From the NCBI GenBank assembly GCA_020184695.1, contig JAANOX010000135.1, positions 1 through 39,575 of the forward strand: 39,575 nt of DNA, written 5' to 3'. Positions 10,977 to 38,672 of the stretch are shown here, piece by piece. The position numbers and the translations under genes are program-made. The first letter of the stretch is position 1. Each line of letters opens with the position of its first letter. The notes under the pieces are model-generated. The model was not told where the DNA came from. It made no database searches and worked only from the letters and a program-made list of their open reading frames with translations. Source of the DNA: Histomonas meleagridis 2922-C6/04-290x. Taxonomy: Eukaryota > Protista > Parabasalia.

Positions 10977-11321
10977 TTAATAAATTAATAATAATTCTAA
11001 CATAAAATATTCTGGTTCAATTTCTTTACCATTCATTTCTTTAAACCATATTTTAAAATTTGGTTTTCTACTTTTTATATTCATATTTCTTATATTTAGT
11101 TCTATTTTCATTTGTATAAATACAAAAAAATAATCTTCATAATGATCACGTTCAATGAAATCAGCATGCATTGAAACATCAGATACTAAATATTCCTTAA
11201 ATTTACACTTACATTGTTGTACTACTATATATCTAGGATTTTGAGAATCCACAAATTCAGGCGGAAAACGGTTTTCTTTTTGTGAAGTACAAAAATACGT
11301 TTTAATCACTGGTTTAACCAT
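10977..11321 (-). CDS. Probable minor capsid (penton-like) protein
   Basis: Likely ATG at 11321 (MVKPVIKTY); beta-rich, ends FKIWFKEMNGKEIEPEYFMLELLLIY, resembling single-jelly-roll penton C-termini; adjacent to fiber; inference. Confidence 0.5.
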   Translation of the reverse strand: MVKPVIKTYFCTSQKENRFPPEFVDSQNPRYIVVQQCKCKFKEYLVSDVSMHADFIERDHYEDYFFVFIQMKIELNIRNMNIKSRKPNFKIWFKEMNGKEIEPEYFMLELLLIY

Positions 11322-11359
11322 AAATAAAAATAAAGGTTGTAATGAGACCAAACAATAAC

Positions 11360-11643
11360 CGTCGCTTTTTGACTACTAACCTCCGATCAAAGATAAATCA
11401 AATAGGATAAATGTCCGACCAAAGATAATCGGGGACAATTTGTGCTGGTTATGCGAGGTTTTTGTTAGGTTTATGCGAAAAGTGGTGCTAAAAGTGCTAT
11501 CGTTCCTATCAAAAAGTTTCGCGTTCTCTCAAAATTGAATGTGCATTCAAATATTCAGACGAATTGTATGGCTCACAAAAATCATTTTGATTTTTGTAGC
11601 GAGCGGAGCGAGCACACTCTGGGGATTGGAGGGGTCTGAGGCC
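11360..11643 (-). repeat. Right terminal inverted repeat of copy 1
   Basis: Reverse complement of 1-271. Confidence 0.93.
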
Positions 11644-11697
11644 CCTCCGGAGGGGTCCGAATGGCACCTCCGGAGGCCTCAGACCCCTCCAATCCCC
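11621..11697. other. GC-rich terminal hairpin: 23-bp perfect stem with two internal CCTCCGGAGG palindromes
   Basis: GGGGATTGGAGGGGTCTGAGGCC (11621-11643) pairs perfectly with 11675-11697; internal palindromes at 11642-11655 and 11667-11676. Confidence 0.95.
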
Positions 11698-11712
11698 CCA
11701 GTGAAAACTTAA

Positions 11713-11732
11713 GGTCGGGATCAGTCCCGACC
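11713..11732. other. Small 8-bp perfect hairpin distal to the terminal hairpin
   Basis: GGTCGGGA-TCAG-TCCCGACC. Confidence 0.85.
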
Positions 11733-11741
11733 GCATTATAT

Positions 11742-12836
11742 ACCTACCCAAGCTCAACAGGATGTGAGATATGCAAAACCTAGAGCACGATAACCAGATG
11801 GATCACGTTTATTAACATCACGTGTTAAATCAGAACCTCAAAGAAGATATGTTACAGAGGGTGATGCTCAATATATTTTCGATGATGATTTAAGTCATTA
11901 TCAATATACTGGTTCTGATAGAACATTAATTGATGAGAATATAAAAGCTTTAGCACATTTTATTCTTGATTTAAAGAAAGATGTTAGAAAAGTTAGAGAT
12001 GCACAAACATATGGAGGTGCTTTGGAATATGTTAACAAACATAATGATGGTAAAGATGAAAAATATCATTGGTCAGTAAAAAAAAAAGATGTTAATGCTG
12101 ATGGAATTCCAGATATTATTATAAGAGATCAACATAAAAGAGCTAAATTTGTTATGGATAGACAGTCAAAAAACAAGATCCTTATCAAGTAGCATATATG
12201 GAATATTTACAAAATAATTATGATAATCCTACACAAAGAAAACAATATGTAGCAGATGGAAATAAGATTAAAATATTTAATGAATGGTTAAATACTGAAG
12301 TAAGAAAAGTAAATTATCCAAAACCATTTGATGATCCAATTGTTACATATAATTCTGCATATAATGACTTTAGGGAAAAAGTGAAAAGGGCTAATGATAA
12401 CTATTATAGAGATACGGGTATTATGAATATTTATAAATTACATAGTACTCCAAGAAGAAGGTCAGCAAATGCAGTATTTACTAGTTTACTCGTTAAAGAT
12501 GCATATAATGAATTCAGTGATGGTTTTATAGATAATACTGAATATCAAGGAAGAATTAAGGCTTATTGTCCAATATTTCAATTATCTCTCGTATTATTTA
12601 AAACAATGATTATTTGTAAAGTAGAAGTTATATTACAACAACATAATATTTCAGATATTGCTAAAGGTAAAAAATATAAAATGCCAGAGTCAGGGGAAAG
12701 TTATTATTCAACTGCTTGTAAAAAAGTTGTTACTGATTTGTTAAATGACTCTAATAATGAACAAATAATGCTAGATGCAGTCGAAAAATATGTAGTAAGT
12801 ATAATTGGTACACCTAATGGACTAGCAGATCGATAA
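11742..12836 (+). pseudogene. 5'-truncated divergent paralog of the 5545-7014 gene (element copy 2)
   Basis: DENIKALAHFILDLKKDVRK...DVNADGIPDIIIRDQHKRAKFV aligns with DENMDTLAHLILDLKKDVKK...DINKDGIPDVIVADQHKRAKFV. Confidence 0.8.
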
Positions 12837-12865
12837 ACAAAAATTTTTAAAATCATTATTTTTTT

Positions 12866-13348
12866 ATGATTAAAATAAGTGATTTATCACCCCATGTAGG
12901 GAAGGATAATCCTGAACATAATAGTTCTAGTGCTAATTGTAAAGTTATTATTATTAATAATAACAATAGTGAAACACCAGCACATTATCCTGAAGTTAAT
13001 GAAGAAACACCAAAAATAATTACAAGAGAAACTGAACTTAATACTGATAATGCAAGTGCTTTATATAAACATATAGCTTTAACATTTAGTGCAATATTAA
13101 AAACAAATAATATGAAATTAATAGCAAATTTAATTGATAATAGTGGAAAAATTATTATTAATGCTAATGATTTAGTACAAGCTATAAGTTTAATTTTAGA
13201 AATTGATTTTAATCAAGTTAGATTAAGTTATGAAGATCCTGAACCTGGATGTTTAAAACATGTAAATCCAATTAAAAAAGTTAACTCAATTAAGATTAAT
13301 GGTTATGATTTTAGTTCACAATATAATAAAGAAAAAAACATATTAATG
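12866..13348 (+). pseudogene. Near-identical copy of the 7053 gene, truncated by the MULE
   Basis: Homology ends at ATTAATG 13348; the ORF runs on into foreign sequence. Confidence 0.85.
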
Positions 13349-13976
13349 TATAAAGGGAACGTATTTTACATACGCACTTTTATACGCGCTTTTCGTAATA
13401 AACTATTCAAATACGCACTTTTTTGAATGCACGCCGATCTAACCGAAAAAATTCCAATTTTTTTGATTTTTTTTAAACTTCGAAAATCAAACTTAATGAT
13501 TTTCAATAAAATTAATATATAATATAGCTTATATAAAGTAATAAAATAATTTAATGTTAAATCTTCAAAAAATTAATTCTAAAATGAGATAAGATCAATT
13601 TAAAAAAATATTTTTATTTTAAAATTCCAATAACATTAATCGAATCTACACATTCAAAAACATATATATATATAATGTTTTTTTGGATTAAAATATCTTG
13701 TATTCATGGGAAGAAATGAAGATATTTTCCAAAAAAATTGAATTGTATTGAATTATTGAATGAGTATTCAATTCTTACGTGGAAAAACCGTAAATAAAAA
13801 CAACACATTCAAAAATTTGCCGTCCGATATTTAACTCAAAAGTGATTTTCTGTTCACAATAAAAATATTTCCATTAAAAAAATGATAAACAAATAATTTT
13901 TATTACTATTATATGAAGAAAGATCAATCATTATTGACTATATCAGAGTTTTATTAATTTTATTAAATTAAATTTT

Positions 13977-14488
13977 TAATTCTCATCAAGCCACTTTTTT
14001 TTTTTTTTTTGAAATGAAAAAATTAAAAAAAATAATTTCGTTCACAATTTTCAATTCAATTTAAAATTGCAAAAATTTTATTGTTTATATAGAAAGTGCC
14101 TCTGAAATTTCCATACCAGCTCTTCTCATGTCTACTGAAAATAATGTGCAAAACTATTAATGTAAGCTAGTAACGTACAACATTTCATATTCTGATTCTT
14201 TTTAAATATAATGAATGCAACCATTTTGTCATGAGTAATAGGAAATGGTTCTTCGTGTATTAGATTTATCATCACTTTGGCATAAGCATGAATCAGCCTA
14301 TCATATGTACTTTTCGTTCCTGCTGAAACATTTGCGGCTGATATTGTATCAGCTTCAGCAAGTAATTGCTCCATCAATGACATTTTTAAATATGATTCAT
14401 AAAAAAAAAACTTAAAAACAATATTGAAAATTGTGAGCGAAATTACTTTTTTTAATTTTTTCATTTCAAAAAGTGTCGATGAGAATTA
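13977..14488. mobile_element. ~510-bp cassette with ~66-79-bp inverted repeats, inside the MULE
   Basis: 13977-14055 (TAATTCTCATC...CACAATTTTCAAT) inverted at 14423-14488; no TSD identified. Confidence 0.65.
14132..14383 (-). pseudogene. Tyrosine-recombinase N-terminal (SAM-like core-binding) fragment, Crypton/DIRS-like
   Basis: AGTKSTYDRLIHAY...PFPITHDKMVAFI...CTLLAYINSFAHYF matches the helical YR N-domain pattern; no catalytic domain follows. Confidence 0.5.
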
Positions 14489-14491
14489 CAC

Positions 14492-14556
14492 ATAATAAAG
14501 GCAACTTTTTAAGACGATGACCAAAGTTCTTCGTCTTAAAAAGTTGCCTTTATTAT
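14492..14556. repeat. Perfect 26-bp palindrome with 13-nt spacer
   Basis: ATAATAAAGGCAACTTTTTAAGACGA / TCGTCTTAAAAAGTTGCCTTTATTAT. Confidence 0.95.
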
Positions 14557-14599
14557 TTGTGAAATATCAATTAGATTGCATTCAAAATTTAGTTGATGA

Positions 14600-14930
14600 T
14601 TATTAAAACATTATATGCTAATTTATGCATTTACTCATCATTAATTATTTTATTCATTCATTATTATTTATCATAATGTATTTTGAATATTTATCATTCA
14701 TCATTATATATTATTGATCATTTATTGTTATATTTATTTATGAATAACATTATGCATTACATTAATGAATAACATTATACATTATATTATACGATATATT
14801 ATACATTACATTAATAATGAATAACAATATTCGTTACACTAATGAATAACATTATACAATATATTAATGAATGAAAATATAAATAACATCATACATTTCA
14901 TTATATATATATATATATATATATATATTA
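14600..14930. repeat. AT-rich degenerate tandem repeats (AATGAATAACATTATAC-like) ending in (TA)n
   Basis: Visible reiteration; inverted copy at 24530-24850. Confidence 0.75.
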
Positions 14931-15335
14931 ATTCAAATTAAAATTAATTTTCATTGATTTGTGAAGTTTAACATAATGAAATATTATATCACATTTTAGC
15001 ATATCAAATATTTATATATAAAAATTAAGAGATAAAAAATAACTTCTATCTCATATATTGGATATATATATAGATTTTATTAATTGTTTTGAAATTAAAA
15101 TAATAAAAAGAATTATAATAGCGATGGCTTGTTTATAAATTTTTCAAAAATATTATATATTCATTGAGAAAAATGAACAAAATTTTCGAATTTTTTTACT
15201 TAAATACTAACACTTTTAAATATTTTATTTGTTATGCCACAATTGATATATACCCTATTATTGAACGATCATTTTTAACACAAATACAATTTTTTGTGAA
15301 CATAACAGTCAAAAAGTGCCCAAACTTCACATTTT

Positions 15336-16170
15336 ATGAATTTGTGGCCTGATCGCCATTCTTCTCGTCAACAATGGACTCCAAGTCTTATTACTCATGA
15401 TGGTTATCAATACCGATATGATTTTCAATGCTTTACTCCAATGGATCAATGAATCAACACCAAAAGGTTTATATTATAAATACAGTTTCACAAGAAAAAA
15501 TTAGAAATTATATTCACCATTTAAATAAAATAGCTCAAGGAAATATAATTTCAATTGAAAAATCTTTAACATTAAGTAATGAGCGATTTGTATTATTTCA
15601 ACTCCGAAATGATAAGAAGCCAATAATAAGAAGCAACATATATTTATGCATTCCAAGCTTTTAAAAATAGTTTACAAAGATTCGGTAACGGTTTCAATGC
15701 GGACGTTAAGTCAATCTGCGATTTTGAAGCAGCAGAAATCAATGCAATTATAGAAGTTTTTATTACAAAATCAAATTCATTACAATTATGTTACTTTCAT
15801 CACACTTAGACAATTCGGAGGAAAGCTCAAAAAATTTATCGGAAATAATATCAATAATAATTCATTCCATAATTTAATTAAAACAATTAATATTTTATCA
15901 AGAATTCCGAAAAAAAGTGCCGTCAAATTAATTGAATTTTTACCTGAAATTGAATGCATTGATGGAAGCATGCAGTAGTTTATTAAATATTTCATTAAAA
16001 CTATTTATAGAAAATATTCTATCGATTATTGGAATTCTGAAGGCAAACCCAGAAGTGACATTCTGACAAATAATATCAACGAAAGTTTCAATAGAAAAAT
16101 CAGTAATTCAATTGGGAAAAATTCAAATATCTCACAATTTTGCACAATCATTCAAAAACTGGAAAATTAA
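15336..16170 (+). pseudogene. MULE transposase remnant
   Basis: LITHDGYQYRY, SICDFEAAEINAIIEVF, CYFHHT*TIRR, LTNNINESFNRKI; first catalytic D region absent; stops and frameshifts. Confidence 0.85.
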
Positions 16171-17010
16171 ATGAAAAACAAATATAATTGCATTAATTTT
16201 AGATAAAATACTTTCCGGTTGGGATTTCGAAAAATCTTTTTTACATCAAATTAATGATTTGAAAAAAAAACGAAGTTTTTAATAATGCATTAAAAAATCA
16301 AAATGACGAAAAATTTGGTCTGAAACCATTACCACATTCCAAACCCCCTATAAAATTAGCTTTTACAATAAAAATACCACGATTCTCTTGGAACGAGAGA
16401 ACACAAAAATGGGAATTGGTGGAAGATGATGATAATAAAATTCTGAAATGAACGTTGAGAAAACCGTAAAAAAAATGAGAAAAAAAAAAATTATGATAAA
16501 AAAAGGGTATCTTTTTACAGCACAGTGTTCTGCAGCACAGTAAACCGATAGAACTTTTTGATTGGTTTACATAAATATACATTCATTGTATTCTAACATA
16601 GAACTTAATTGTAACCATATTCAATAAATTTAATCAAAACTCTATACAGACATGGTTTCTTACGACATAATGGTATAGTATTAACTTAAATTTTGATGTT
16701 TTATGAAAATAAAAGACAAATTATTTTTAAATTTATATATATCAGTTAAAATGATTATATTAAATATATAAAATATCAGTAATAATTAATTGGAGTGAAT
16801 ATTTTCGCCACACCAATTTTATACTTATTGTATAATCGGACATCAACCATTATAAACTGATAACATCACCACCGTTTATATAACCGTTCATATTTGAAAG
16901 TAAATCAATCTATCGGTTTTCCCAATACGTTTTGTTTGCTTTTTAATCGGTGAAGGGTAATTTATTGTTGTAAAAAAACGATAGGAAATTTCAAAGAAAT
17001 AATTCAATCA

Positions 17011-17242
17011 AGAATAAAAATATAAGAATAACACAATATGATCAACAAACAAGAGTAACAATATAAGAACAACACAATATGATTAACAATATAAGATTGA
17101 CAATATAAGAATAAAAATATAAGAATAACACAATATGATTAGCAATATAAGATCAATACAATATAAGATCAATACAATATTAGATTAATACAATAAGATT
17201 AACAATATAAGAATAAAAATATAAAAATAACATAATATAATC
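17011..17242 (+). repeat. Degenerate tandem repeat (AATATAAGAATAACACAATATGAT-like)
   Basis: Reiterated units upstream of the zinc-knuckle ORF. Confidence 0.75.
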
Positions 17243-17273
17243 ATTACCAGTAAATGCATCGAATGAACCTGAA

Positions 17274-17612
17274 ATGGTGGTCTCACGAAAGAAAGGAAGA
17301 AAAAAGAAAAGTCAAAACGAACCAGAAGTTATAAGTGAAGATACGCCATCATGCAGAATATGTAAAAGTGAAGAACACAGAGCAGAAAACTGTTTGATAT
17401 ATAATTATTACATTTGGAGAAAAAACAATTTTTCCGGTCCAAAAAATAATTTTAAATGTAAAGTTTGTGGCTCACGGGGTCATAATTCACAAACATGTGA
17501 CGTAAAAAGAGGAGGAGTATTTCGGATAAATGATGAAGTAATTTATTCTTTTTATGGAGATATTTTTCCAAATAATATTGAAGGTTTAATACTAGAAAAA
17601 AGTAATGAATAA
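17274..17612 (+). CDS. Small protein with two CCHC zinc knuckles and a basic N-terminus
   Basis: CRICKSEEHRAENC and CKVCGSRGHNSQTC (CX2CX4HX4C); RKKGRKKK. Confidence 0.7.
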   Translation: MVVSRKKGRKKKSQNEPEVISEDTPSCRICKSEEHRAENCLIYNYYIWRKNNFSGPKNNFKCKVCGSRGHNSQTCDVKRGGVFRINDEVIYSFYGDIFPNNIEGLILEKSNE

Positions 17613-18199
17613 AAAATTCATTGAAATTTGTTATGAATATATTCGATAATCAAAAATTTTCATCTTGAACTGAAATGTTGGGATTTTTTATCTCCACGTA
17701 ATGAATGTGTAACAATTGTTTGCTGACTGAAATGATCAGCTATCATTGTCAACAATCCAAAAAAAATGATTTTTGCGCCAATTAAATAATTTGCACAAAA
17801 ACTTCATTGAATATCGACGTTATCAAAATGACATATTGTCAAAATTTGGTTTTTACCGGGTAAATATTCGATATGAACAAAACAAAAAGTTCTATCGGTT
17901 TACTGTGCTGCAGAACACTGTTCTATAACAAGACATCCATAAAAAAATATAATATAAGATAAGATAAGATAAGAAATAAAAAAATAAGAAAAGATATTAG
18001 AAAAAGGAAAGCCTGGGAAAATAAGGGAGTGCTTGGGTGGGGAAAAGAATAAAAAATTTGGAAAATATGTGTAAAAAAAAAATCAAGAATAGGAAAATTC
18101 CAAATAAAAATATATCAATAAAAAATACATAATTCCCATTTCGAATTATCGAAAAATTACAGAATATTTTCATTATATGTGAAATATATTATTTGATGT

Positions 18200-18486
18200 A
18201 TAAAACAATGTGTAATATTGTTCATATTGTCATTCATTAGTGTATTGCATTATGTCATTAATTTATGTATTGTATAATGTCATTAATTAATACATTGTAT
18301 AATGTTATTAATCGATGTATTGTATCATGTTATCAATTAATGTATTGTATAATGTTATTAATTAATGTATTGTATAATGTTATTCATATTGTTATTAATT
18401 AATGCATTGTATAATGTCATTAATTGATGTATTGTTTAATGTTATTCATATAGTTATTCATCTATGTATTGTATAATGTATTGTAT
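18200..18486. repeat. Degenerate tandem repeat (TGTATTGTATAATGTTATTAAT-like)
   Basis: About 20-22-nt reiterated units. Confidence 0.8.
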
Positions 18487-18556
18487 AAGCTTGGAATGCA
18501 TAAATATATGTTGCTTCCTATTATCGGCTTTTTATCATTTCCGAGTTGAAATAATA
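18487..18556 (-). mobile_element. Distal piece of inverted MULE copy B (split by the mariner insertion)
   Basis: Reverse complement of ~15593-15662. Confidence 0.9.
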
Positions 18557-18632
18557 CAGGGGGGTAAAAAAGTACCCAACCCACCCCTCAAAAATGCTCA
18601 AATCTTAATATTAATTAATTTAGTTAATGTTT

Positions 18633-19500
18633 TTAATTAATGTATTCACCATTGTTTCTAATGACATCTTCCAATCGGTTAATCCATTCATGGAACACAT
18701 TTTGAAGGTCTTCGAAAGTAAGATTGTCCCATATTTATTATTTAATGGCACTTTTTAACTATTTTTCATCGTGAAATGATTTACCTGCGGACTTGTTTTT
18801 CGAGTATCCGAAAAACCGGAAGTCACTTGGTGCAATATCGGGGGAATATGGCGGATGGGGTGCTCTTATTAGTCCGCTTTTTTTTTATACAATCAGTGGT
18901 CACTTTTGAATTATGAATGCGACAGTTGTCCATTTGAATAAACATACCCTCAACTTTTTTCTTTCTAGTACCAATTCGTCCATTTTTGACGATGCTGGAT
19001 AAAATGCATCCACAAAAATGTGTTAAATTAAATTTTAAACCTGGATCTAAAATCTTAACTGTTACAAGGCCAACACCAGTAAAGAATATTGTAACCATCC
19101 GTTTTTTTTTGTATTGATACTTTGTCTCAACCTTGGTGTAACAGAATCTGGATTTGGTGCCCATTGAAAGGCATGATCATAATGCATATTAAACCAACTT
19201 TCATCACCAGTAATAATATTGGCAAAATTGTTTGGTTCATCTGCCTTAAGTATCTTTAAAAGTTCTTCTGATTCTTGGACCCTTTTTAATTTTTGTTCAT
19301 TAGTGAGTAAATGAGGAATCCATTTTTTTGAATATTTATTATAATTCATTTCTAATTAGTTTCTCTTAACAACAAATTTATCAACGTGGAAAGCTTTTGC
19401 CATTACCTTGGTTGATGCATAAGGTTCATCATTGAAAAATTTAAAATTAATTCCTTAATATCGATTTTTGGCCTTCCACTCCTTGGGAGATCTTCGCCTG
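18633..19500 (-). pseudogene. Mariner (DD34D-type) transposase A, 5'-truncated
   Basis: RSGRPK, KWIPHLL, ITGDESWF, IQMDNCRIH, PYSPDIAPSDF across frameshifts. Confidence 0.9.
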
Positions 19501-19502
19501 TA

Positions 19503-20410
19503 TATGGTGATAATATTATTACACTTCGAACAGTTCAGAAATGGACAAAAAAGATGAATGAACATACCTTCTCAATTTTCGAACAGAAAAAAATAGGGAG
19601 ATTAAGAAGATCAGATTTAGATCAAAGAATAACCAGTTTTATATTAAGTTATCCATATGCATCGACGAAGAAAATTGCGAAGAATGTAGGCGCAGATCCA
19701 AAAACAGTGAAAAATATAATGATTAATATTTTAGGGATGAAAAAAGTTAACTTCGAATGGATCCCACATAAGTTGACTCCAGAAATTAAAGCCAAAAGAG
19801 CTGCCATTGCTTCTGAATTATTTGAATTCCTTTCTAGTTCAAATGACTACAGACTAAGACACATATTGACGCAAGATGAAACCTGGATTTATTTTGTTAA
19901 CGGGAGAAACTCGATGTGGATTGAATCTGGAGTGCAAAAACCATACAAACCCAAACAAACTATTGCCTCCAAAAAAATAATGATATCTGTTATATGGTAT
20001 ATAACTGGTATCAAATCAATAACAATGCTCCCGATAGGCCAAAAATTTAATCGAATTTTATTTTCTGAAGTTGTACTTGGAGATTTGGCAAAAAGAATTT
20101 CAACGAAGGGATATTTTTTGCATATGGATGACGCCCGGCCTCATTTGGTTCATGAAAAATTGAATGAATTGGGGATTAAAAGACTTCCGCAACCCACGTT
20201 TTCGCCAGACCTCGCACCTTCTGACTTTTTTCTGTTCGGATATCTAAAAAAATGCTCGAAGGTGAGGAGTTTGAAAATGAAGATCAACTTTTTCAAAAGG
20301 TTGAAACATTACTGTATAATATTCCTAAAGACACCTTCAGAGCCGTATATAATGAATGGATGAACAGACTTTTAATTACAATTGAAACTCAAGGTGAATA
20401 CATATCATAA
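19503..20410 (+). pseudogene. Mariner transposase B, 5'-truncated, frameshift near 20250
   Basis: WIPHKLT, ILTQDETW, LHMDDARPH, PTFSPDLAPSDFFLFGYLK. Confidence 0.92.
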
Positions 20411-20451
20411 ATTTACAAAATTTCTTTTACTTTTTTATTCATTAAAAACAA

Positions 20452-20481
20452 GGCTAACGAACGCACTTTTTCCACCCCCTA
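20452..20481 (-). repeat. Right TIR of mariner B
   Basis: Reverse complement TAGGGGGTGGAAAAAGTGCGTTCG..., similar to the outer TIR, followed by TA. Confidence 0.65.
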
Positions 20482-21007
20482 TAATTGGTTTAATTTAAGT
20501 TCTCAAGAAGGATATATGGGTTGTTTTTGCTAGTAAATAAAATATAATTTGTTTTCCAATAATTAGATGTGCATTATATTATGATTAATAAAATATTTAT
20601 CATTTTGACAATTCAAAAAAAATTCAGATATCTTTAGATACTATAGAGCAATTCGTGGTTTTTGTTCATATTTTCACATGGCAGTATTTGTATATTATAT
20701 ATGTATAATATATTTATAGAATGTTAGGTGAAAAATAAAATATTAGAGATTTTTTAGAACTTTATTTTAAGATAATATTCTTAAATTCTGTCTGACAGAC
20801 TCCTTCCTTATAGAAGCATATGCTTAAAACATATATTTTGGATGTTTTTTATGAAACTTTAATATTGGTGTCACAAATCATCGAAGAAAATTGAATACAA
20901 AATGGACGTTAAACTCGCCCAAGAATTGTGAGAAAACGGCTAAATGAATACTTTATGGTGACGATAGAAGCTCAGGGTTTATCAAAAAGTCAAAAAATTG
21001 AATCGAG

Positions 21008-23444
21008 TTGCCCACGATAGAACAAATTCAGAATGATAACGGTTTTGGTGGTTTTGACATTATGGTCATGTGTCAGCCTGAAAAAATTCTAATTCGGTAT
21101 CTCCTAAACAATTTCGTTCCAGATTGGAATATCTACGAAGACGAGATCAAGATCAAGATTGAATTCCTTTATTTTCATATCCTAAAACAGCAAATTACAT
21201 TTAATCATTTATCACAAATTTTTGTTTTTATGGGTTTAGATCTTAGGCAAACAAATGAAATTCTTGATTGTGCATTGAATAGTCCAGGCCTTCTTGTCCC
21301 AACTGTGAAAAATTCTTGGTCAAAAGAAGAAAAACTCTTGCTTGTGACATGTTGGGTGAAATTTGGTTGCTTTGACAAGGTTTGTTCGATTCTTCCATGG
21401 CAACCATGTGAAGGTTGCAGAAAGGAGCTGTTCAGAATCAGAGATTTATATAAAACGAAACAAAAATTCGAAAATAAAATTATTACGCGAGAAATCGCAA
21501 ATAATGAAATAATTGACAAGTCTCCTTTAATTTTTGTTTCAAATAACGATGAAAAAACAAACAATGATAATTTTGACCATAGCAAAAATATTTCAAAACA
21601 GCTTTTTATATGAAATAATATCAGAAATAGAAGGAAATTAAAAGGACAGCAACTTATTTATGCACGTAAGATCAAAACTTTGAAAACATGCTCCAACATT
21701 AACGAGAAAAAATTGCGGGAAAACAAATTCATTTTTCTAAATGAATTTGATGATATCTTGAATGAAGCTGAAAAGAATTTCAGGAAAAATAATGGCAAAA
21801 GGTATTCACAATCTAGCAAGGCATTTTGGGTCAGACTCATGATGTACAGCAGAAAATCGTTCGCGATGATGAAAGAATATCTAAATGGACCGAGTCAAAG
21901 TACTGTTGATCGATGGGTTAATAATAAGAAAAGCATTCCAAAATGGAATAATTCAGAAAGTTTAGATCAAGTTGATAATATAATTCAATTTTGGGCCAAT
22001 AGGCTTCAACTTTCGAGTGATGAGTTCTATACAATCAGTATTGATGTTGCAAAAGTAGACGAAAATTTAACAATAACTTCGGATGGAGAAGTTAGAGTAA
22101 CAATTGAACAAATTAGTCTTCCAAGGGAACCAATAGAGTACAAAGAAGATCGTGAATTATATTGCAATCTTTGGAATGAGTTATTAGATCGAATAATGAT
22201 TGTTACTCATATCTTCGTCATATTAATATGTCCATTGTCACCAAAAAGGTCTTTTCCTATTTATATAAAATTTTCCAACTCCAGATCTGCTACAGCATAT
22301 ATCAGAAATGATCTTGATTATATTATCAATCACTTAAAAGAAAAAGGAATGAAGATAAAATTTATTGGAAGTGATGGGGATAAATGCTATAGAAACAATT
22401 TCGACAAGCAATATAAAAGAATTACATCATTATGGAATAATAACATAATAAATCTTGATGAAATTTCAAGCGAAGAAGTGATGTATTCAAATGATGCATA
22501 TCATTGCTTAAAACGCCTAAGAAAAGCAATGATAAATAACAAAAGTTTATATCTCAAACCAGATTATATAAATTCATCTCATTGTGTTTCTCAAAATACA
22601 CTTCAGCAGATTGACAAAACGTTTTGTCCAAATCTGGAAATTATTCAGTAATTCTTTATTTATGGGTTGGTGTATTGGCTAGAAGTGTGATGGCAAGCAA
22701 GCATCTTACAAGGTTTAAAATATGTCAAATGTGTTATATTGGCTTATTTATTGTGGTCTTTTATAAAATGTTCTTAGATGTATGGAAAAAGGATCCAAAA
22801 ACAAAATTTTCAATTTCCAAAATGATTTTGAGTCCCATCTTATGCATTGATTACGCAAATTTCTTTTCATGCATGATCAAAGCATTAACATCAATACCTG
22901 ACACATTTCCTTTATCTCGTGTTGGATCAATTTTATCTGAACATTTCTTTGGGAGAATAAGAAGAAATGCCGAAAATTGTCAAACAATGGATTCTATTAG
23001 GTCAGCCATTAATAAGATACAATTTATTGATACATATCGAAAAGACACTAACTTTGATGATGCAAATCATAGAAGGAGGCTAGAATCCGCTCTACTACTG
23101 TAGTAGAATCAGGAATTATTTCATTTGACAATGATGAAATTTTGAAATGCAGAGATTTTGTAAAAAGTTTGTTTCATCAGGTTCAACTTTTAAGATTATT
23201 TGACACCGAAATATATAGGTTTTTGATGAAACCAATATATTCCGATATTAATTCTTTGGAAAAAGAATTATCTGAGAAAGAAAATAGTAATGAATTAACT
23301 GAAACCAAGAAACATTGGACGCTTAATGCTGCACAGTTTCGTGTGAATGGAAGATATGGTAGAAATATCAAAAATAGATATGCTACTTCCGCAAAACCCT
23401 TTCAATATATTAATTCATCCCATCCAGATAGCTTTTATGCTTGA
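21008..23444 (+). pseudogene. P-superfamily (THAP9/Galileo-like) DDE transposase with N-terminal Myb/SANT-like domain
   Basis: RYSQSSKAFWVRLMMYSRKSFAMMKEYLNGPSQSTVDRW, ISIDVAKV, GSDGD, DAYHCLKRLRK, SEHFFGRIRR; ORFs 21008 and 21680 are in frame across a single TGA; WSKEEKLLL...KFG...LP. Confidence 0.75.
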
Positions 23445-23871
23445 GTTTATTCGTTTTGACTTTTCTAAACTGTGTTTTGTAATTAATAAATTAATAAAAA
23501 CACAGTTTTATCATAAAATGAAGAAAGATAGCACTTTAACGACCGTTTAGCACCATCACATTTTCAATCATTAATTGGTCAAAATAAAATTGTCGTTTTA
23601 ACTTTTTGAATTTGATATTAAACACATTTTAAAACATAAATATCTTTGAATATGTATGATTTAATGAGAAGTAAATTGACTTGTTGATTATGCAATATAT
23701 TGTAATATATATGTTATTGATATCTTTAAATAATACCTTGAAATTATGTAGTGGAATACGTCTTCTCAAATACAAGAGTTTATACTTATATATAAATACC
23801 ATTTTATGTTATGATTCATTATTCTTAATAAAAAATTACAGGGGTGGGTCGGATACTTTTTCACCCCCCTG

Positions 23872-26026
23872 TACAAATCGCTCATTACTTAATGTTAAAG
23901 ATTTTTCAATTGAAATTATATTTTCTTGAGCTATTTTATTTAAATGGTGAATATAATTTCTAATTTTTTCTTGTGAAACTGTATTTATAATATAAACCTT
24001 TTGGTGTTGATTCATTGATCCATTGGAGTAAAGCATTGAAAATCATATCGGTATTGATAACCATCATGAGTAATAAGACTTGGAGTCCATTGTTGACGAG
24101 AAGAATGGCGATCAGGCCACAAATTCATAAAATGTGAAGTTTGGGCACTTTTTGACTGTTATGTTCACAAAAAATTGTATTTGTGTTAAAAATGATCGTT
24201 CAATAATAGGGTATATATCAATTGTGGCATAACAAATAAAATATTTAAAAGTGTTAGTATTTAAGTAAAAATTCGAAAATTTTGTTCATTTTTCTCAATG
24301 AATATATAATATTTTTGAAAAATTTATAAACAAGCCATCGCTATTATAATTCTTTTTATTATTTTAATTTCAAAACAATTAATAAAATCTATATATATAT
24401 CCAATATATGAGATAGAAGTTATTTTTTATCTCTTAATTTTTATATATAAATATTTGATATGCTAAAATGTGATATAATATTTCATTATGTTAAACTTCA
24501 CAAATCAATGAAAATTAATTTTAATTTGAATTAATATATATATATATATATATATATATAATGAAATGTATGATGTTATTTATATTTTCATTCATTAATA
24601 TATTGTATAATGTTATTCATTAGTGTAACGAATATTGTTATTCATTATTAATGTAATGTATAATATATCGTATAATATAATGTATAATGTTATTCATTAA
24701 TGTAATGCATAATGTTATTCATAAATAAATATAACAATAAATGATCAATAATATATAATGATGAATGATAAATATTCAAAATACATTATGATAAATAATA
24801 ATGAATGAATAAAATAATTAATGATGAGTAAATGCATAAATTAGCATATAATGTTTTAATAATCATCAACTAAATTTTTGAATGCAATCTAATTGATATT
24901 TCACAAATAATAAAGGCAACTTTTTATTTCTTTTAACTTTGGTCATCGTCTTAAAAAGTTGCCTTTATTATGTGTAATTCTCATCGACACTTTTTGAAAA
25001 AAAAAAAAAAAAAAAAGTAATTTCGCTCACAATTTTCAATATTGTTTTTTTAATATGAATCATATTTAAAATGTCATTGATGGAGCAATTACTTGCTGAA
25101 GCTGATACAATATCAGCCGCAAATGTTTCAGCAGGAACGAAAAGTACATATGATAGGCTGATTCATGCTTATGCCAAAGTGATGATAAATCTAATACACG
25201 AAGAACCATTTCCTATTACTCATGACAAAATGGTTGCATTCATTATATTTAAAAAAAGAATCAGAATATGAAATGTTGTACGTTACTAGCTTACATTAAT
25301 AGTTTTGCACATTATTTTCAGTAGACATGAGAAGAGCTGGTATGGAAATTTCAGAGGCACTTTCTATATAAACAATAAAATTTTTGCAATTTTAAATTGA
25401 ATTGAAAATTGTGAACGAAATTATTTTTTTTAATTTTTTCATTTCAAAAAGTGGCTTGATGAGAATTAAAAATTTAATTTAATAAAATTAATAAAACTCT
25501 GATATAGTCAATAATTATAGATATTTATTCATATAATAGTAATAAAATTATTTGTTTATCATTTTTAATGGAAATATTTTTATTTTAAACAGAAAATCAC
25601 TTTTGAGTTAAATATCGTATGTCAAATTTTTTTGAATGTGTTGTTTTTATTTACGGTTTTTCCACGTAAGAATTGAATACTCATTCAATAATTCAATACA
25701 ATTCAATTTTTTTGGAAAATATCTTCATTTCTTCCCATGAATACAAGATATTTTAATCCAAAAAAACATTATATATATATATGTTTTTGAATGTGTAGAT
25801 TCGATTAATGTTATTGGAATTTTAAAATAAAAATATTTTTTTAAATTGATCTTATCTCATTTTAGAATTAATTTTTTTAAGATTTAACATTAAATTATTT
25901 TATTACTTTATATAAGCTATATTATATATTAATTTTATCGAAAATCATTAAGTTTGATTTTCGAAGTTTAAAAAAATTCAAAAAAATTGGAATTTTTTTC
26001 GGTTAGATCGGCGTGCATTCAAAAAA
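23872..26026 (-). mobile_element. Inverted MULE copy B (main part)
   Basis: Near-identical reverse complement of 13419-15592, including the YR cassette (25071-25324) and the palindrome (24907-24971). Confidence 0.92.
25071..25324 (+). pseudogene. Second copy of the tyrosine-recombinase N-terminal fragment
   Basis: Same sequence as 14132-14383, with a frameshift in an A-run. Confidence 0.5.
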
Positions 26027-26249
26027 TTGAAATTATTAATGTAAAGTATTGTAAATTGAATATGTCATAGCTTAAAAATCTATTTTCTCACTAGGGTAAC
26101 AGAATCTTGACTGGAGGTACCACTAACGTCCTTCGCAAGATGGGACCCAGTGGAAAATGATTTTTTTAATTGTTAACGGTATATTTATAAATAACGACAT
26201 GATGAGCGCTCATCTATTCAATTAGATGTTAATTATGTGTTAAAAGTGG

Positions 26250-31290: not shown

Positions 31291-31627
31291 AATTTTGTAA
31301 AACATTTAATTTATTTACATAAGCATTATATTTATTAAAATCATCATTAAATATTTGATTCAATAATTCCATTTTAGATATTTGATAAGCTTGATCTAAT
31401 TGTTCAGGTGTTATATATTGTAAAGGATTCTTTATAGTAGGATGATATTTTTCATCTATAAATTTATAAATTTGTTTTCTTAATAAATTATGATATTTAT
31501 TATATACAGTTACAGTTAATGTTATTACATTTTTATTTTTAACGATAGAAAATGAAGGTTTAATATTTATAGCAGTAAAATCACAATCTTTAAACTCTTG
31601 AGCGAAGCATGTATAAAGAGATTCCAT
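31291..31627 (-). pseudogene. 3'-truncated copy of the 4295-4666 gene
   Basis: Near-identical up to NVLQN, then foreign sequence. Confidence 0.8.
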
Positions 31628-31666
31628 TAATAATAATGAATTGATTTTATAAAATTATTTTATTTT

Positions 31667-32467
31667 ATGGAAAACGATATTAATATTGATGCCTTAGATA
31701 ATATGATTGATTATTGTTAATATAAAAATAAACCTAAATTAAATGAAGAATTAATAATTGAAATTCATCCAGAAGTAAATGTACCTTATAATTCTTTAAA
31801 TATAGCAGTAGGTAGACAAAGAAGTGGGAAAACTCAATGTATAATTAGAGAAATTATTAAAATTAGTAATATTAGTCCTAGAACTCATTTATTAATTTAT
31901 ATTAATAAAAATGGATTAGAAAATGATCCTACATTTGAATCATTAAAACCTTTAATAAAGATTCCAATATTATATGTAGCTGAAAATCAAGCAGAAGATA
32001 TCGTTAAAGATATATTAAAATGGATACAATTTTATAATGAAATTAAAAATAATCATTGGGAAAATAAAATAGTAGATAATCAAATATCTGAATTATTTGA
32101 AAAATTATCATTTAATAATTTTAATAATTTAACTTTACATACTATAATATTTTTTGAAGATTGTGCTAATAGTCCTTTATTTATAAAACCTACTAATTAT
32201 TTTAATCAATTATTTACTAAATTAGCTCATATTCAATGTTCTGTATTTTTCGCTGTACAATTTTGGAAATCTTTACCTGCTGAAGTTAAAGCTAATGTAA
32301 GTACTATATTTATATTTCCTAATTTCTCTAAACAACAATTAAGTTATATGTTAGCTCAAATACCATTGCCTTATACTAAAGATCAAATTTATTCAGTTTA
32401 TCAAAAACTGTCAGGACATCAAAAAATGATCGTCGACGTGAATAATCAAAAAATAAAAATTGAATAA
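31667..32467 (+). pseudogene. Packaging ATPase, copy 3 (267 codons, one TAA at codon 18, no frameshift)
   Basis: AVGRQRSGKT, IIFFEDCANS, LAHIQCSVFFAVQ; missed by the ORF track. Confidence 0.88.
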
Positions 32468-32498
32468 AAAATGATAAATTAAAATTCATATTTTTTTA

Positions 32499-33972
32499 AT
32501 GTTAAAAGGCCAACAGGGTATAGATAATGAAATAGCTACTTATCTCAATGTTCTTGGTATTGATATGACTGCTGCTAAAGAAAACTTAAAACAATGGAGA
32601 AATAATCAATCCAATAAAACTATAAATGATCTCAATAATCAAATAAAAATATGGCGAACATTAAAAACAACCAATATAGATGAGAATACTTTATGGGACA
32701 ATATATTGACGTATTTACAAAATATTCAACATCCGTTTTTTGAGGATCTAGCCGCATTTCATCCAGAAGTACAAAAGGATGATGCTTTGGAAGAAACAGA
32801 ATATGAAGATCATTTTTCATCAGTGCAGCCAACAGTAACTATCGAAGACATTAAACCAATTTTGTCTAACGAAATTTCACCATTGGGTTATGAAAAAATG
32901 GTTGGAAAATATCAAAAAAAAAGAACAAATACTAAAGGTTTACCACCACCTTTAAGACCTCATGAATATCACATTAGAACTCCTGATGGTAAAATGTATG
33001 ATTTTATAGAAGATAAATCAAAATATAAATATACTGGAGGAAGTAATGTTATATTGGATGAAAATATGGATACATTAGCACATCTTATTCTTGATTTAAA
33101 GAAAGATGTTAAAAAAATTAGAGAGCTTCAAACAATAGAAGGAGCAAGAGCATTAGTTGAAAAACACATAATAAAGATAAAAAGGATCCAAGATATCATT
33201 GGACTGCAATTGAAGAAGATATAAATAAGGATGGTATTCCAGATGTTATAGTTGCAGATCAACATAAAAGAGCAAAATTTGTAAATGGATGGACAGTTAA
33301 ACAACATGACCCCTATGAAGCACAATATATAAGATTTTTACAAAAAAGTTATGGTAGTCCACAAAATAGAAAACTTTTGAGAGCAAAAGGTCAACATATA
33401 GAGGATTTCGATGAATTTATGGATAAATATATAAGAAAAGTTTCATATGATGATAATAAGCCATTTGATGATCCTAGGGTAGAACCTACCCCAGAAGGTA
33501 GACAAATTATGGATACTGTTGATAAATTTAATTTAAAGTATTATCAAGATACAGGTGTTAGAGATGTTTATAAAACACACAAACCAAGAAGGAGAACAGC
33601 AAATCAAGTGTTTACTAGATATGTTATTAAGCCAATTTATAATGATTATCTTAAAGATTATCAAAAGAATAATGCTAATGATGAACAACTTCCTGTAAAG
33701 TTAGCTATGATTAAAGGAATGTTTTCAATACTTAGTGTATCTGCTAAATTTTATAATGACATTATATAAAAACAAGAATGAATAAGATATTGGCAGGTCA
33801 AAATATTAAAAATGAGAAAACAGCTAAGAAATATATTAGAGAAGATACAGGAGGAAATTATTGGACAAGCGCTTCAAAGCAAGCAGTTTCTGAGATTTTA
33901 CTAGATAAGAATAAATTTGCAGATGTTAAAACATCATTATATGGATATATTAACAGTAATCGTGGTTTCTAA
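32499..33972 (+). pseudogene. Copy of the 5545-7014 gene
   Basis: Track ORFs 32499, 33377 and 33778 are near-identical to copy 1. Confidence 0.8.
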
Positions 33973-34010
33973 ATAAAGAAAATTTTTTTTTTTAAAATCA
34001 TTATTTTTTT

Positions 34011-34517
34011 ATGATTAAAATAAGTGATTTCTCACCTCATTTAGGGAAGAATAATACTGAACATAATAGTTCTAGTGCTAATTGTAAAGTTATTATTATT
34101 AATAATAACAATAGTGAAAAACCAGCACATTATCCTGAAGTTAATGAAGAAACACCAAAAATAATTACAAGAGAAACTGAACTTAATACTGATAATGCTA
34201 GTGCTTTATATAAACATATAGCTTTAACATTTAGTGCGATATTAAAAACAAATAATATGAAATTAATAGCAAATTTAATTGATAATAGTGGTAAAATTAT
34301 AATTAATGCTAATGATTTAGTACAAGCTATAAGTTTAATTTTAGAAATTGATTTTAATCAAGTTAGATTAAGTTATGAAGATCCTGAACCTGGATGTTTA
34401 AAACATGTAAATCCAATTAAAAAAGTTAACTCAATTAAGATTAATGGCTATGATTTTAGTTCTTAATATAATAAAAAATATAACACATTAATGGATGAAT
34501 TCAATATTTCCTTATAA
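34011..34517 (+). pseudogene. Copy of the 7053 gene (CAA>TAA at 34464)
   Basis: Native end DEFNISL* at 34517. Confidence 0.8.
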
Positions 34518-34523
34518 AAGGAT

Positions 34524-35378
34524 TCATTTATAAGTATCATAATTTTCATACCAGTCATTAGTATCAGGATTACCATGCCAATACCGAATTTCGTCAGTAG
34601 GTTTAATATTACCCCATCCTGAATGGAATATTTCATCTTCTTCTTTTGAAGGTATATTAATTGCATTTGGAACTGGATTTAATAAATATCTTAGTACTGA
34701 TATTTTTATTCCTTTATATTATGTATATTAAATTTACCTTTTTCGTAATTATCTACTATATAAATATCTGGTAATATTTTTTGATCTCTTTTTTAATTGA
34801 TCTGTGTTATAAACTGTTACTGATGTACCAGGAGGTAAATTAAATCCTTTTTGTTTCATAATTTTATGATTTAATTCATGTAAAGGTAAATCAATAGATT
34901 TTTGTTTTATTTTTGCTTCATATGGTAATATTTTTTTATGATTTAATTTAGATAATGTTTTATGATAAGTATAATTATAATTATGTATAATTTTATTCAT
35001 ATCATAAGGTTAAATACACTCTAAACCCATATTATCAGCCATATCTCTAATAGTTCTACAAATTCTATTAATTATAGCTAAAGATTGATGTATAGGATAA
35101 GATTTATTTTTAATTATTATTCTCTCAACAGGAATTATTTTAGTACCAATTAAATAATTTGATATATATTGTAAACGTTTTGCCCAAAAATGTATTTTCT
35201 GAATCACAATAAATAATTTTGGGATTAAATAAACCTGTACTATAAAGTTCAAATAAAGCTTTAGCTACACTTTCGATTGATTTTTTACTATGTTTATCGT
35301 TCATTTTAATATTAGTGATAGTACCTAATAAATATCTAGTTTGTACTTCTACAGCTAATAAATTACAATAATCATAAT
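34524..35378 (-). pseudogene. Integrase, copy 3 (3' part; divergent from copy 1)
   Basis: YCNLLAVEVQTRYL, IIYCDSE, SLAIINRICRTIRD; retains a C-terminal tail that copy 1 lacks. Confidence 0.8.
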
Positions 35379-36242
35379 TAAATTCATACATATTAGATTT
35401 ACATGAAAGTACAGTTAAACCTGTACAATATAAAGAAACATTCTCAGTTGCAGTATCAATAGTATGATTAGTTTCAGTATCACATTTAAATGTAGTAGTT
35501 ATATTAGCAGAATTACCAATTTGAGTAAAACCATGAGTAAATAAAGGTAAATTATTAAATGTAGCATTAATAGTAGAATCTTCTAAAAATTCTATAACTT
35601 ATTTAATTTTACGTGGATCTACTTGACACCAAATTAAACCATTTTGTTTAACATAAAACTTTAATTCAATATCACCAACTAATCTATTTGAATATAAATC
35701 AAATGCTTGTAAAGCTAATATATCTTCAAATGGAAGATTCATTTCAAATTCGATATCATGTTTATTTCCATCTGCAATTGTATTTAAATCAACATAAGTA
35801 CCACAAACAGATTGATAATATTCTTAAACATTTTCATATAAAGAATGTGTATATTTCCTAGTTTTCTTTTCAGCATAGGGTTTAATTGTTGAATAACAAT
35901 AACCTTCTCGACAACATTCATTTTGTTGATAACCAGTAGAAATATTATTAGACATAATTTGTAATTGATCTAATAATTGATTAGAACTCTTAAAACCTAT
36001 ACATATTTTAACTAAATTTTCTGGATCTGACAAATTACCAGATGAAATAGCTTTTGATAATTGTATAGTTATTCTAATTTTAAAATTAATAAAACCTTCA
36101 GTTATTTGTGAAATCATATGATCACCATGAGTAATTCTTAATCTAGTTTCTTAAGATTGATTAAATGGTGCATTTTGATCATGACAATCTTCAGTTCTTA
36201 AAATAAAAGAACGAGTACCATCATTTTTAGCAATTAAATCTT
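35379..36242 (-). pseudogene. 5'/central part of the major capsid gene, inverted and joined to the integrase
   Basis: Matches 2150-2700; adds NRLVGDIELKFYVKQNGLIWCQVDP...CKSNMY, which is missing in copy 1. Confidence 0.8.
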
Positions 36243-37244
36243 CATTACACTTAAAGAAGTGGTCATGATAAAAAATTAATTATGATAAAGTAGTAATATT
36301 AAAGTAGTTATAATAAAGTAGTTATAATTAACAATAAATATAATAAAGAAGTAGTTATTTATATTAATTCACCTTATATAACACCAGATAGAATGTAAAT
36401 ATTTATCAATATATATAATAATCATACATATCATAATTATATAGAATGTTCTCCAACTGATATGTTTAATAATGAAAATATTGAAAAATAGTATATATTT
36501 GAGTGTCTAAAATTAGCAGAAAAACAACAAAGAATAAGAGATTTAATGATCTTAATAAATTATAATGTTAGATATATATTACCTAGTGTTATGGACGGAA
36601 AACATTCAAAATTATTCAATTTTGTGTAAAGTATTTAAAAAGTTCAATTGAATACATAAATGGTCCCTAGTATTCAAATTGACAAGGTTTTGTTTGGCTG
36701 TATATGCATACAATATGAATTTTGTTTCTTTGCTGTTTACCAGATGAACAGACAAAATACGAAATTATTCAATTTCTGTAAATAAACTATTCAAAATTAT
36801 TTAAATGTATATTTGGTCTTTATATCGATGGCAAAAGTGTCAACGAATTTGATGTGTCTACCAGCTGGACAAATAACATTCGAAATTATTCAATTTCGGT
36901 ATGAAGTATCTAATATCTTTTATAAAAAAACTCATAATATTATGAGTATGTTATATAACAATGAAAAATTTATATCGTCATGCATTAAAAATACTACGCT
37001 TTTTAGGCCTTCGGTACTCGCAAAATATTTTATTAAAACCATTAAACAATCATTTTTACTTAATAATTTGCAAAAAAATTTATTAACAGTCATCATTAAA
37101 AAAAAAAAAATTAGACCTTTTAGTTTATTCAATTTGGTGAGTTGAATGGTTTTGTTTGACATCAACAATCCACATTGGGGGAATTGTCGGATTCCAGTGG
37201 TTTCCTTGATTGTATCGCTGAATAGGAGTCATGTGGGTTTTTCT

Positions 37245-37713: not shown

Positions 37714-38672
37714 CTTTTAGCCCCAGTTTTTCAAAACCTCTTTTAATAGCTCCTGGGCTAACAATTTGAGTCCTTATCCGCGTGAACCCTGACCTATTAT
37801 ATTGAGGAATGCCGAGCGTGGCTTCCCCAATTCAGAGGAAACCTCTCAATTTTTCAATTAATTCAATTTTCGATAAACGATAACTATGAATTTTGAATTT
37901 TTCTGAAATTTCCTAATGTTATAACAAAATAAATTGAATAAATTCATTTTTCAATCAACGATGCCTATCGTTTTATTCTTGAATCATTTTTATTTTGTTT
38001 TAAAATGTGACTTTATTCATAATAAGCATGATATACACGTTAGCAACATACTAACAATGAAATAACATTTTTATACATGAAATATATGAAATGCACATAT
38101 GAAATATATGATATGCACATATTAACGATGGAATATCATATTTATACAGGTAATATGATGTAATAAAAGCATAATGAAAATGTGATATCAATCATTGAAT
38201 AAATTGAATTCGAATTGAATTTTTTCAATGGCATGCTATCTATTTCAATAATAATCATTCAATTATTTATAAGTAACCGTCACATTTGATTTTTTATTTC
38301 GAATTTCTGTTTTGTAGCTATAGGATATAAATAACATACTCTGATTTCGATATATTTTAATCTATCAATAAAATATAATATATTTACTATGTTTTCGACT
38401 CGAAAGAATAAACTATGTATCAAAATTGATTTATCTGTTGAATTTTTGAAACTATATAATTATCTCAAAAATTGTGTCTAAACGTCATGCATTTTCAAAT
38501 ATTTGTATGTCTTATTGTGAATCAAAAGTAAAAATATTTGAAGAAATTGTTAGATACTTTATTTTGCGTATAACGTATATAGTTTGATAAACTTCAACGA
38601 AATATTGCGACTTATTCACAACAATGTCCCTGCTATTGAAATCGCCACTATGGTATCGTTCAGAATCCGAAT

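Follow-up and report, generated by a model that had tools for sequence, protein, structure and literature searches.

How does a linear virus-like element copy its ends when a long and stable hairpin lies close to them? The question is raised by a GC-rich palindrome in the terminal inverted repeat of an element found in a 39,575-nucleotide stretch of Histomonas meleagridis DNA (the whole stretch is referred to as the window). A preliminary description placed this palindrome at the very tip of the repeat, compared it to the T- or Y-shaped ends of parvoviruses and proposed hairpin-primed replication of an integrated element with a double jelly-roll capsid. Self-priming by a hairpin requires a paired 3′ end. 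We examine the fold of the palindrome, its position, its presence in other copies and the genes which accompany it. The element is an endogenous Polinton-like virus relic of a Histomonas-type parabasalid; of all parts of such viruses, the termini are the least well understood.

The palindrome, hereafter hairpin 1, is a discrete island: its G+C content is 70% (11621-11697) as compared to 27% in the window. The stem comprises 23 perfect base pairs, as previously described, followed by a 2-nt bulge and 8 further pairs. When computed as single-stranded DNA, the segment 11600-11750 folds with −55 kcal/mol (z = −10.7); 200 dinucleotide shuffles gave a mean of −24.2 ± 2.9 kcal/mol, and none was as good. 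The two CCTCCGGAGG decamers reported within the stem are indeed both present. However, they do not support a parvovirus-like shape. The T-shaped fold, in which each decamer pairs with itself, reaches −23.6 kcal/mol versus −42.2 kcal/mol for the plain linear hairpin (a gap of about 19), and the isolated decamers do not fold when computed alone. Furthermore, the second decamer is non-palindromic in three of the four other copies.

A hairpin of this kind could also act as RNA, if read-through transcripts of the repeat gave rise to small RNAs silencing the element. The Rfam scan returned only generic microRNA-precursor matches below threshold (best 39.4 bits versus a 65-bit cutoff). Such matches are obtained with any long GC-rich hairpin and no Rfam family reached its threshold; we regard an RNA role as barely credible.

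The position of hairpin 1 becomes clear from the layout of the two repeats, in which the following features are distinguished (none has a strand):

1..311, no strand: left terminal inverted repeat, truncated at position 1 of the window; the left copy of hairpin 1 is represented by its inner arm (bases 1-23)
11320..11748, no strand: right terminal inverted repeat, intact as far as the tip
11575..11597, no strand: AT-rich palindrome (arms of 10 bp, loop of 3 nt) on the inner side of hairpin 1
11621..11697, no strand: hairpin 1, GC-rich 77-nt palindrome
11699..11713, no strand: 15-nt spacer, conserved in all copies
11714..11731, no strand: remnant of palindrome 2 (18 nt), seen as a full palindrome in other copies
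11732..11748, no strand: 17-nt non-palindromic tip, identical in six ends

Within the window, the repeats pair over 20-154 / 11489-11623 (90%) and 167-311 / 11320-11464 (77%). The left repeat lacks the loop and the outer arm of hairpin 1, the spacer, the second palindrome and the tip. Its first 23 bases are, as proposed, the left-end equivalent of the inner arm: they are the reverse complement of the right-end arm with 4 differences in 23 positions, and if the window start is a contig end these are its least reliable bases. The predicted partner arm of bases 1-23 has no other occurrence in the window. At the right end, the repeat extends to 11748, and the spacer, the second palindrome and the conserved tip all lie outside hairpin 1. 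The palindrome is consequently subterminal, contrary to the first assignment.

For the analysis of other copies, five H. meleagridis loci (L001-L005) were collected from two assemblies besides that of the window. L001 is 95% identical to the window copy, while the remaining copies are more diverged. The hairpin is found in other copies: five ends carry the complete module and reach the tip, namely the right ends of the window copy, L003 and L005 (win_R, L003_R, L005_R) and the left ends of L001 and L004 (L001_L, L004_L). At a sixth end, the right end of L001, the module is gone and the tip alone is retained. L003_R and L004_L are 99-100% identical, so that only four independent versions of the module are available.

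Each end with the module follows the same outward order: inner repeat, AT-rich palindrome, hairpin 1, spacer, palindrome 2 and tip. Thereby, three palindromes are packed into the terminal ~260 nt of each repeat. The AT-rich palindrome is kept in every end, with one arm mismatch in the left copy of the window and perfect arms in five others. Palindrome 2 is the most variable component. In L003 and L004 it spans 75 nt with perfect 37-bp arms; in L001 it measures 87 nt and is interrupted by a 12-nt duplication; where it is 75-87 nt long (L001, L003, L004) its arms comprise 36-37 bp. L005 harbors a 46-nt variant with a different arm sequence which is still complementary. The second, 8-bp hairpin of the preliminary description does exist at 11713-11732, but it is the collapsed remnant of this 75-87-nt palindrome. 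The outer edge of hairpin 1 is accordingly 51 nt from the element end in the window and 107-119 nt in the other copies.

The 17-nt tip, read from outside inward, starts with a tandem GGTA (two units), and similarity between copies ends directly beyond it. Both tips of L001 are immediately flanked by ATATAT, a 6-bp target duplication (chance ~7e-4) which rests on this locus, the sole copy with both tips. Palindrome 2 and the target duplication are 17 nt apart. In the fold of the whole 257-nt terminus of L003 (−98.7 kcal/mol, z −14.4), the last 16 nt are unpaired.

GC-rich hairpins with a stem of at least 14 bp occur exclusively at the ends of this element in the window and 16 related loci (~257 kb). 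A dispersed GC-rich mini-element was considered and ruled out, as there are zero solo copies in these 257 kb. Likewise, an assembly artefact is ruled out by the recurrence of the terminal module in three assemblies. Given its presence at both end types and in three assemblies, hairpin 1 is a genuine constituent of the repeat and no artefact or isolated insertion; it forms an integral part of the two inverted ends of this decayed virus-like element, which encodes a capsid.

Genes were mapped onto the window by tblastn with the genes of L006, a 16.8-kb relative from a human-gut metagenome:

2074..3268, + strand: major capsid protein homologue, broken (tblastn to the 539-aa protein of L006, 68-86% identity)
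4337..4666, − strand: homologue of a conserved 131-aa protein (tblastn, 40% identity)
4777..5450, + strand: homologue of a 267-aa P-loop protein, broken by one frameshift (tblastn, 63-73% identity)
5545..7014, + strand: homologue of a 489-aa (L001) / 472-aa (L006) protein, in three reading frames with two frameshifts
7701..8417, − strand: homologue of a 385-aa protein (tblastn, 32% identity)
9223..10956, − strand: 577-aa fibre-like protein, intact, reading frame open
10995..11327, − strand: homologue of a 115-aa protein, adjoining the right repeat (tblastn, 47% identity)

The window copy is a decayed derivative without a polymerase. Its capsid gene changes frame about three times, and one of these changes coincides with a large internal deletion of roughly 135 residues; some of the frame changes in the window could be consensus errors of long reads. 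The capsid was modelled from P0121, the 539-aa protein of L006, with a 46-sequence alignment (pLDDT 91.8). A Foldseek search with this model retrieved the capsid proteins of PBCV-1 (Vp54), SGIV, Sputnik and mavirus with E values of 1e-13 to 1e-9. Judged from the model, the protein is a double jelly-roll major capsid protein, in agreement with the capsid lineage initially suggested. The 267-aa P-loop protein presents Walker A and B motifs in its intact L006 version and has zero sequence matches in Pfam, PHROGs or PDB; it is a putative packaging ATPase, for which Polintons have an FtsK/HerA-type enzyme. The intact fibre-like protein is 64-87% identical to proteins of H. meleagridis which are annotated as tail fibre or as minor tail protein. 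The 489-aa/472-aa protein has no family match, and most element proteins are without a named match in Pfam, PHROGs and PDB sequence searches.

The polymerase is found in fuller relatives. L006 and L008 each have a gene for a family-B polymerase of the protein-primed type (Pfam DNA_pol_B_2; 6.7e-40 and 1.7e-35), and L002, whose repeats belong to the family of the window copy, retains a decayed polymerase in at least four frames (tblastn). Neither the window copy nor L001 has a polymerase. These two copies have different flanks despite 95% identity, and as both are without polymerase yet at different sites, the short derivative has spread.

Other replication and integration functions were searched in the same set. 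Pfam and PHROGs scans showed no HUH/Rep nickase, superfamily 3 helicase or resolvase in the window element or its relatives. The reading frames of the element and of its relatives gave no match to an rve integrase, and among their scanned proteins there is no Pfam match to an adenain-like cysteine protease and no terminal-protein domain or DNA-binding protein.

The capsid family extends far beyond Histomonas. P0121 recruits 609 cluster representatives at E ≤0.001, with no relative in IMG/VR. The capsids P0121, P0223 and P0225 are very common in metagenomes, including those labelled human gut, with identical proteins on 438, 318 and 162 contigs. Metagenome relatives (L006-L016, L022-L025) present compact open gene sets including the polymerase; the human-gut relatives share 70-86% identity in the capsid and also have the ATPase and the polymerase. 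In L007 (2293-11030) and L011 (4183-10203), two or three 539-540-aa capsid-like genes are arranged in tandem or in opposite orientation, and such multiple genes per gut contig suggest adjacent or nested elements. We would guess that the host of the metagenome capsid family is a gut parabasalid such as Dientamoeba. In the literature, no paper was found linking this capsid family to a host and no link between Dientamoeba and Polintons; papers naming both Histomonas and Mavericks concern other subjects.

None of the 20 metagenome contigs of the same capsid family, several of them labelled human gut, contains a GC-rich palindrome anywhere. In two human-gut contigs, mutual similarity ends at a plain AT-rich end. 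A search via the 115-aa neighbour gene and the fibre relative led to human-gut contigs with another gene order and no such termini. Exact-pattern searches with strings of the conserved repeat and the tip gave 0 matches in viral and metagenome collections. So far, the palindrome module is specific to the Histomonas lineage. Its absence from human-gut relatives indicates that the wider family does not need palindromes.

How, then, is the end replicated? The unpaired tip lies at the target duplication, outside both GC-rich palindromes, and the polymerase of the family is protein-primed. Taken together, these two observations favour protein priming. We propose that priming by a protein takes place at the tip and that the palindromes may serve as accessory fold-back elements of the single-stranded end, a reading for which we estimate a probability of about 0.45. 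Since the fuller relatives possess a protein-primed polymerase, replication would most likely start at the 17-nt tip with its tandem GGTA. Once the end is single-stranded, either as a displaced strand or as a 3′ overhang, the palindromes would fold up as hairpins, which could give the end its shape, protect it or assist in recruiting the priming machinery, in a manner comparable to Streptomyces telomeres. The palindromes themselves would probably go back to copying by fold-back or strand switching, a mistake to which strand-displacing polymerases are prone, and templated correction within the strand may keep their arms symmetrical. The accessory reading is supported by the uniform layout of the five complete ends, which come from three assemblies. 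The stable fold of the L003 terminus and the capsid fold also speak for it, as do, from the comparison of copies below, the conservation of the outer module, the perfected stem of the window copy, the inverted centre of palindrome 2 in L001 and the short palindromes nested in the arms. Against it, palindromes are dispensable in the wider family, as the human-gut relatives lack them; the independent versions of the module number only four, integrated copies show no constraint, and neither a terminal-protein domain nor an integrase was identified.

The initial proposal of hairpin priming is at odds with the protein-primed polymerase of the fuller relatives and with the Pfam and PHROGs scans, in which neither a nickase nor a resolvase was matched. 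It nevertheless deserves a closer look in its general form, namely rolling-hairpin or fold-back priming or resolution as in parvoviruses and poxviruses, perhaps as a replacement for the polymerase-linked priming lost in the short copies. The hairpins are very stable and present at both ends, the polymerase-less window copy and L001 occupy different sites, and the same idea has been raised for the terminal palindromes of Halocafeteria elements (bioRxiv 10.64898/2026.07.28.741278). Two further points come from the palindromes: the stem of the window copy appears ‘perfected’, and palindrome 2 has its 3-nt centre inverted in one of three copies, with few of them independent (L001 as compared to L003/L004). 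The inverted centre fits hairpin transfer, but recombination between the arms, or a switch of template from one to the other, would fit equally well. Regarding hairpin 1, flip/flop of its interior had been envisaged, but wherever its loop is kept (four copies), it points the same way with respect to the end. The T shape is unfavourable. Above all, the hairpins are located inside a conserved unpaired tip, so that no paired 3′ end is available. We consider hairpin priming very unlikely.

A compromise would be that the subterminal palindromes form a working fold-back telomere, with ends copied or repaired through hairpin intermediates alongside protein priming. To this we attach only a slight probability. 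If true, it would represent a hybrid mode of end replication which is undescribed for double jelly-roll capsid elements, and it would serve the polymerase-less short copies too.

Returning to protein priming with accessory palindromes, the comparison of copies indicates how far pairing has been maintained. Covariation, predicted in the preliminary description for the arm upstream of the window, was scored in an alignment of five copies of hairpin 1 with 31 pairs. Twenty-three pairs are invariant and two are changed on both sides, so that compensation is found in 2 of 31 pairs; both changes occur in the window copy, and four pairs are broken in some copies. Overall, 89.6% of the cells are paired, a value equalled in 24 of 500 shuffles. 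Compensatory support from this alignment is weak. Uncompensated mismatches are present in L001 and L003/L004. In the outer arm of the window copy, several adjacent bases differ from the other copies, every one of them towards a perfect stem, which looks as if a quasi-palindrome had undergone templated correction and not a series of individual point changes. With hairpin 1 mismatched in this way, and with palindrome 2 collapsed in the window and deleted at L001_R, integrated copies show no constraint.

Breakpoints of deletions or truncations are observed at or inside palindromes in three copies. The one in L002 (9401) falls within the AT-rich palindrome, that of the right end of L001 (9660-9676) at the outer edge of palindrome 2, and that of the window (11714-11731) at the centre of palindrome 2. 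Such a distribution is typical of palindrome instability.

These data bear on the main rival of the accessory reading, according to which the palindromes are by-products without a role: a scar of fold-back or strand-switch copying would have arisen in an ancestral element of the Histomonas lineage, been inherited, and now decays in integrated copies. The human-gut relatives do without palindromes, individual copies are collapsed, duplicated, deleted or mismatched, only 2 of 31 pairs are compensated and the shuffles given above do equally well, and deletion breakpoints in L001_R, L002 and palindrome 2 of the window lie at or inside palindromes. A passive scar accounts less easily for the conservation of the module. 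From hairpin 1 to the tip, the module is more conserved than the adjoining 250 nt of the repeat, and this holds in the most diverged copy: between L005 and the others, identity is 91% in the module versus 66-75% in the adjoining repeat. In addition, palindrome 2 of L005 has changed and is yet self-complementary, and perfect 37-bp arms are still present in L003 and L004. On balance, we judge a mere by-product to be rather unlikely, while giving it serious consideration.

Conservation might also reflect binding of the duplex. In this case, the GC-rich symmetric blocks would be recognised by dimeric proteins of the element or the host, for integration, packaging or transcription control, and hairpins would have no role. 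Short perfect palindromes of 6-10 bp are nested in the arms, where they cover 19 of 36 nt of palindrome 2 (shuffle p ~0.015), the module outconserves the inner repeat, and the precise ends with their 6-bp duplication point to an enzyme which recognises the terminus. Yet arms of 23-37 bp far exceed the need of a protein site, and the exchange of the palindrome-2 arm sequence in L005 with retained symmetry favours pairing over sequence. Neither an integrase nor a DNA-binding protein was identified among the scanned proteins. Duplex recognition sites thus seem distinctly unlikely to us.

Protein priming at the tip with accessory palindromes can be related to several known systems. Polintons/Mavericks and Polinton-like viruses combine a double jelly-roll capsid, a protein-primed polymerase, inverted repeats and a 5-6 bp target duplication. 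The element resembles them by its capsid fold, its P-loop ATPase-like gene and the DNA_pol_B_2 of its fuller relatives, by inverted repeats of several hundred bp and by the 6-bp duplication in L001. Unlike Polintons, the element and its relatives show no detectable retroviral-type integrase; a cysteine protease was likewise not detected among their scanned proteins. The GC-rich multi-palindrome module at the ends, the lineage-variable gene order and the polymerase-less window copy set it apart as well.

With parvoviruses such as AAV, the element shares a stable GC-rich palindrome of similar length within the terminal repeat. The hairpin of the element is, however, non-terminal and not T/Y-shaped, it shows no flip/flop of hairpin 1, and no Rep nickase was found; moreover, the Histomonas element is of a double-stranded capsid type and 12-17 kb in size. 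To our knowledge, bidnaviruses are the only case in which parvoviruses and Polintons meet. They are derived from parvoviruses, their polymerase and inverted repeats are thought to come from Polintons, and these repeats form no parvovirus-like hairpins (PMC4061559). Bidnaviruses use the protein-primed polymerase, a class which the Histomonas family likewise encodes, but no gene of parvovirus origin is seen in the element.

In Streptomyces, the telomeres of linear replicons associate a terminal protein with tightly packed palindromes (PMC4513846). The packed GC-rich palindromes in the terminal few hundred nt of inverted ends provide an analogy, not a membership. Protein priming completes the Streptomyces replicon, but the bacterial proteins are unrelated, and Streptomyces uses an internal origin with a covalently bound terminal protein and end patching. 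The extreme 3′ end of Streptomyces joins the fold, whereas the tip of the Histomonas element is unpaired.

The closest parallel is found in the endogenous virophages and Polinton-like viruses of Halocafeteria seosinensis, in which palindromes lie inside the inverted repeats, beside the target duplications (bioRxiv 10.64898/2026.07.28.741278). These palindromes mainly occur in elements with replication genes other than the protein-primed polymerase, and the authors of the preprint mention hairpin priming as a possibility (bioRxiv 10.64898/2026.07.28.741278). Both cases feature palindromes of tens of nt within the repeats and close to the target duplication. In contrast to Halocafeteria, the Histomonas family has a protein-primed polymerase, three palindromes per end and a 17-nt tip before the duplication. 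Terminal palindromes in Polinton-like viruses are thus already reported. The Histomonas element adds a lineage in which palindromes and a protein-primed polymerase occur together, with close palindrome-less relatives as a comparison group. If terminal palindromes recur in unrelated lineages (stramenopile, parabasalid), they may constitute a general answer to the end problem of small linear DNA viruses; alternatively, they may represent a scar which strand-displacing polymerases leave in general.

Some neighbouring sequences complete the picture of the window. Fragments of the same family are located at 11927-13354, at 31291-35370 and, inverted, at 35380-36243. In the fragment 31291-36243, the ATPase-like gene aligns in one piece and the capsid-gene fragment is inverted. 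Neither of the fragments 11927-13354 and 31291-36243 carries a terminal module. Between them, a 12.6-kb element (13416-26029) is bounded by inverted repeats of more than 2 kb which are mostly 93-100% identical (13446-15592 / 23872-25998). Its reading frames include mariner-like (Transposase_1) and P-element-like (Tnp_P_element) ones. Tandem repeats of 25 nt and 14 nt form arrays at 17010-17255 and 18184-18483, and hairpins of 24-30 bp, rich in AT, occur at 14488-14560 and 24903-24975. Close to the end of the window, the reading frame 38640-39437 encodes a DDE transposase domain of the ISXO2/IS1595-like (Merlin) type (Pfam 8.7e-20).

Related loci also display features of their own. In L002, the decayed polymerase is adjoined by a 471-aa frame (16327-17742) with a proline-rich tail and a stretch resembling a chromodomain (Pfam E 0.056, PDB E 0.7); with this stretch alone, the protein is not callable as an integrase. 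Beyond the polymerase of the same locus, there is a 106-nt GC-rich island (20719-20824). L004 contains, inside the element, a 31-bp perfect inverted repeat around a small GC-rich stem (19271-19363). Lastly, a separate small element with 85-nt inverted repeats (4941-6666) lies just beyond the truncated right end of the L004 copy. It bears a gene for a 272-aa integrase of the rve type and does not belong to the element under study.
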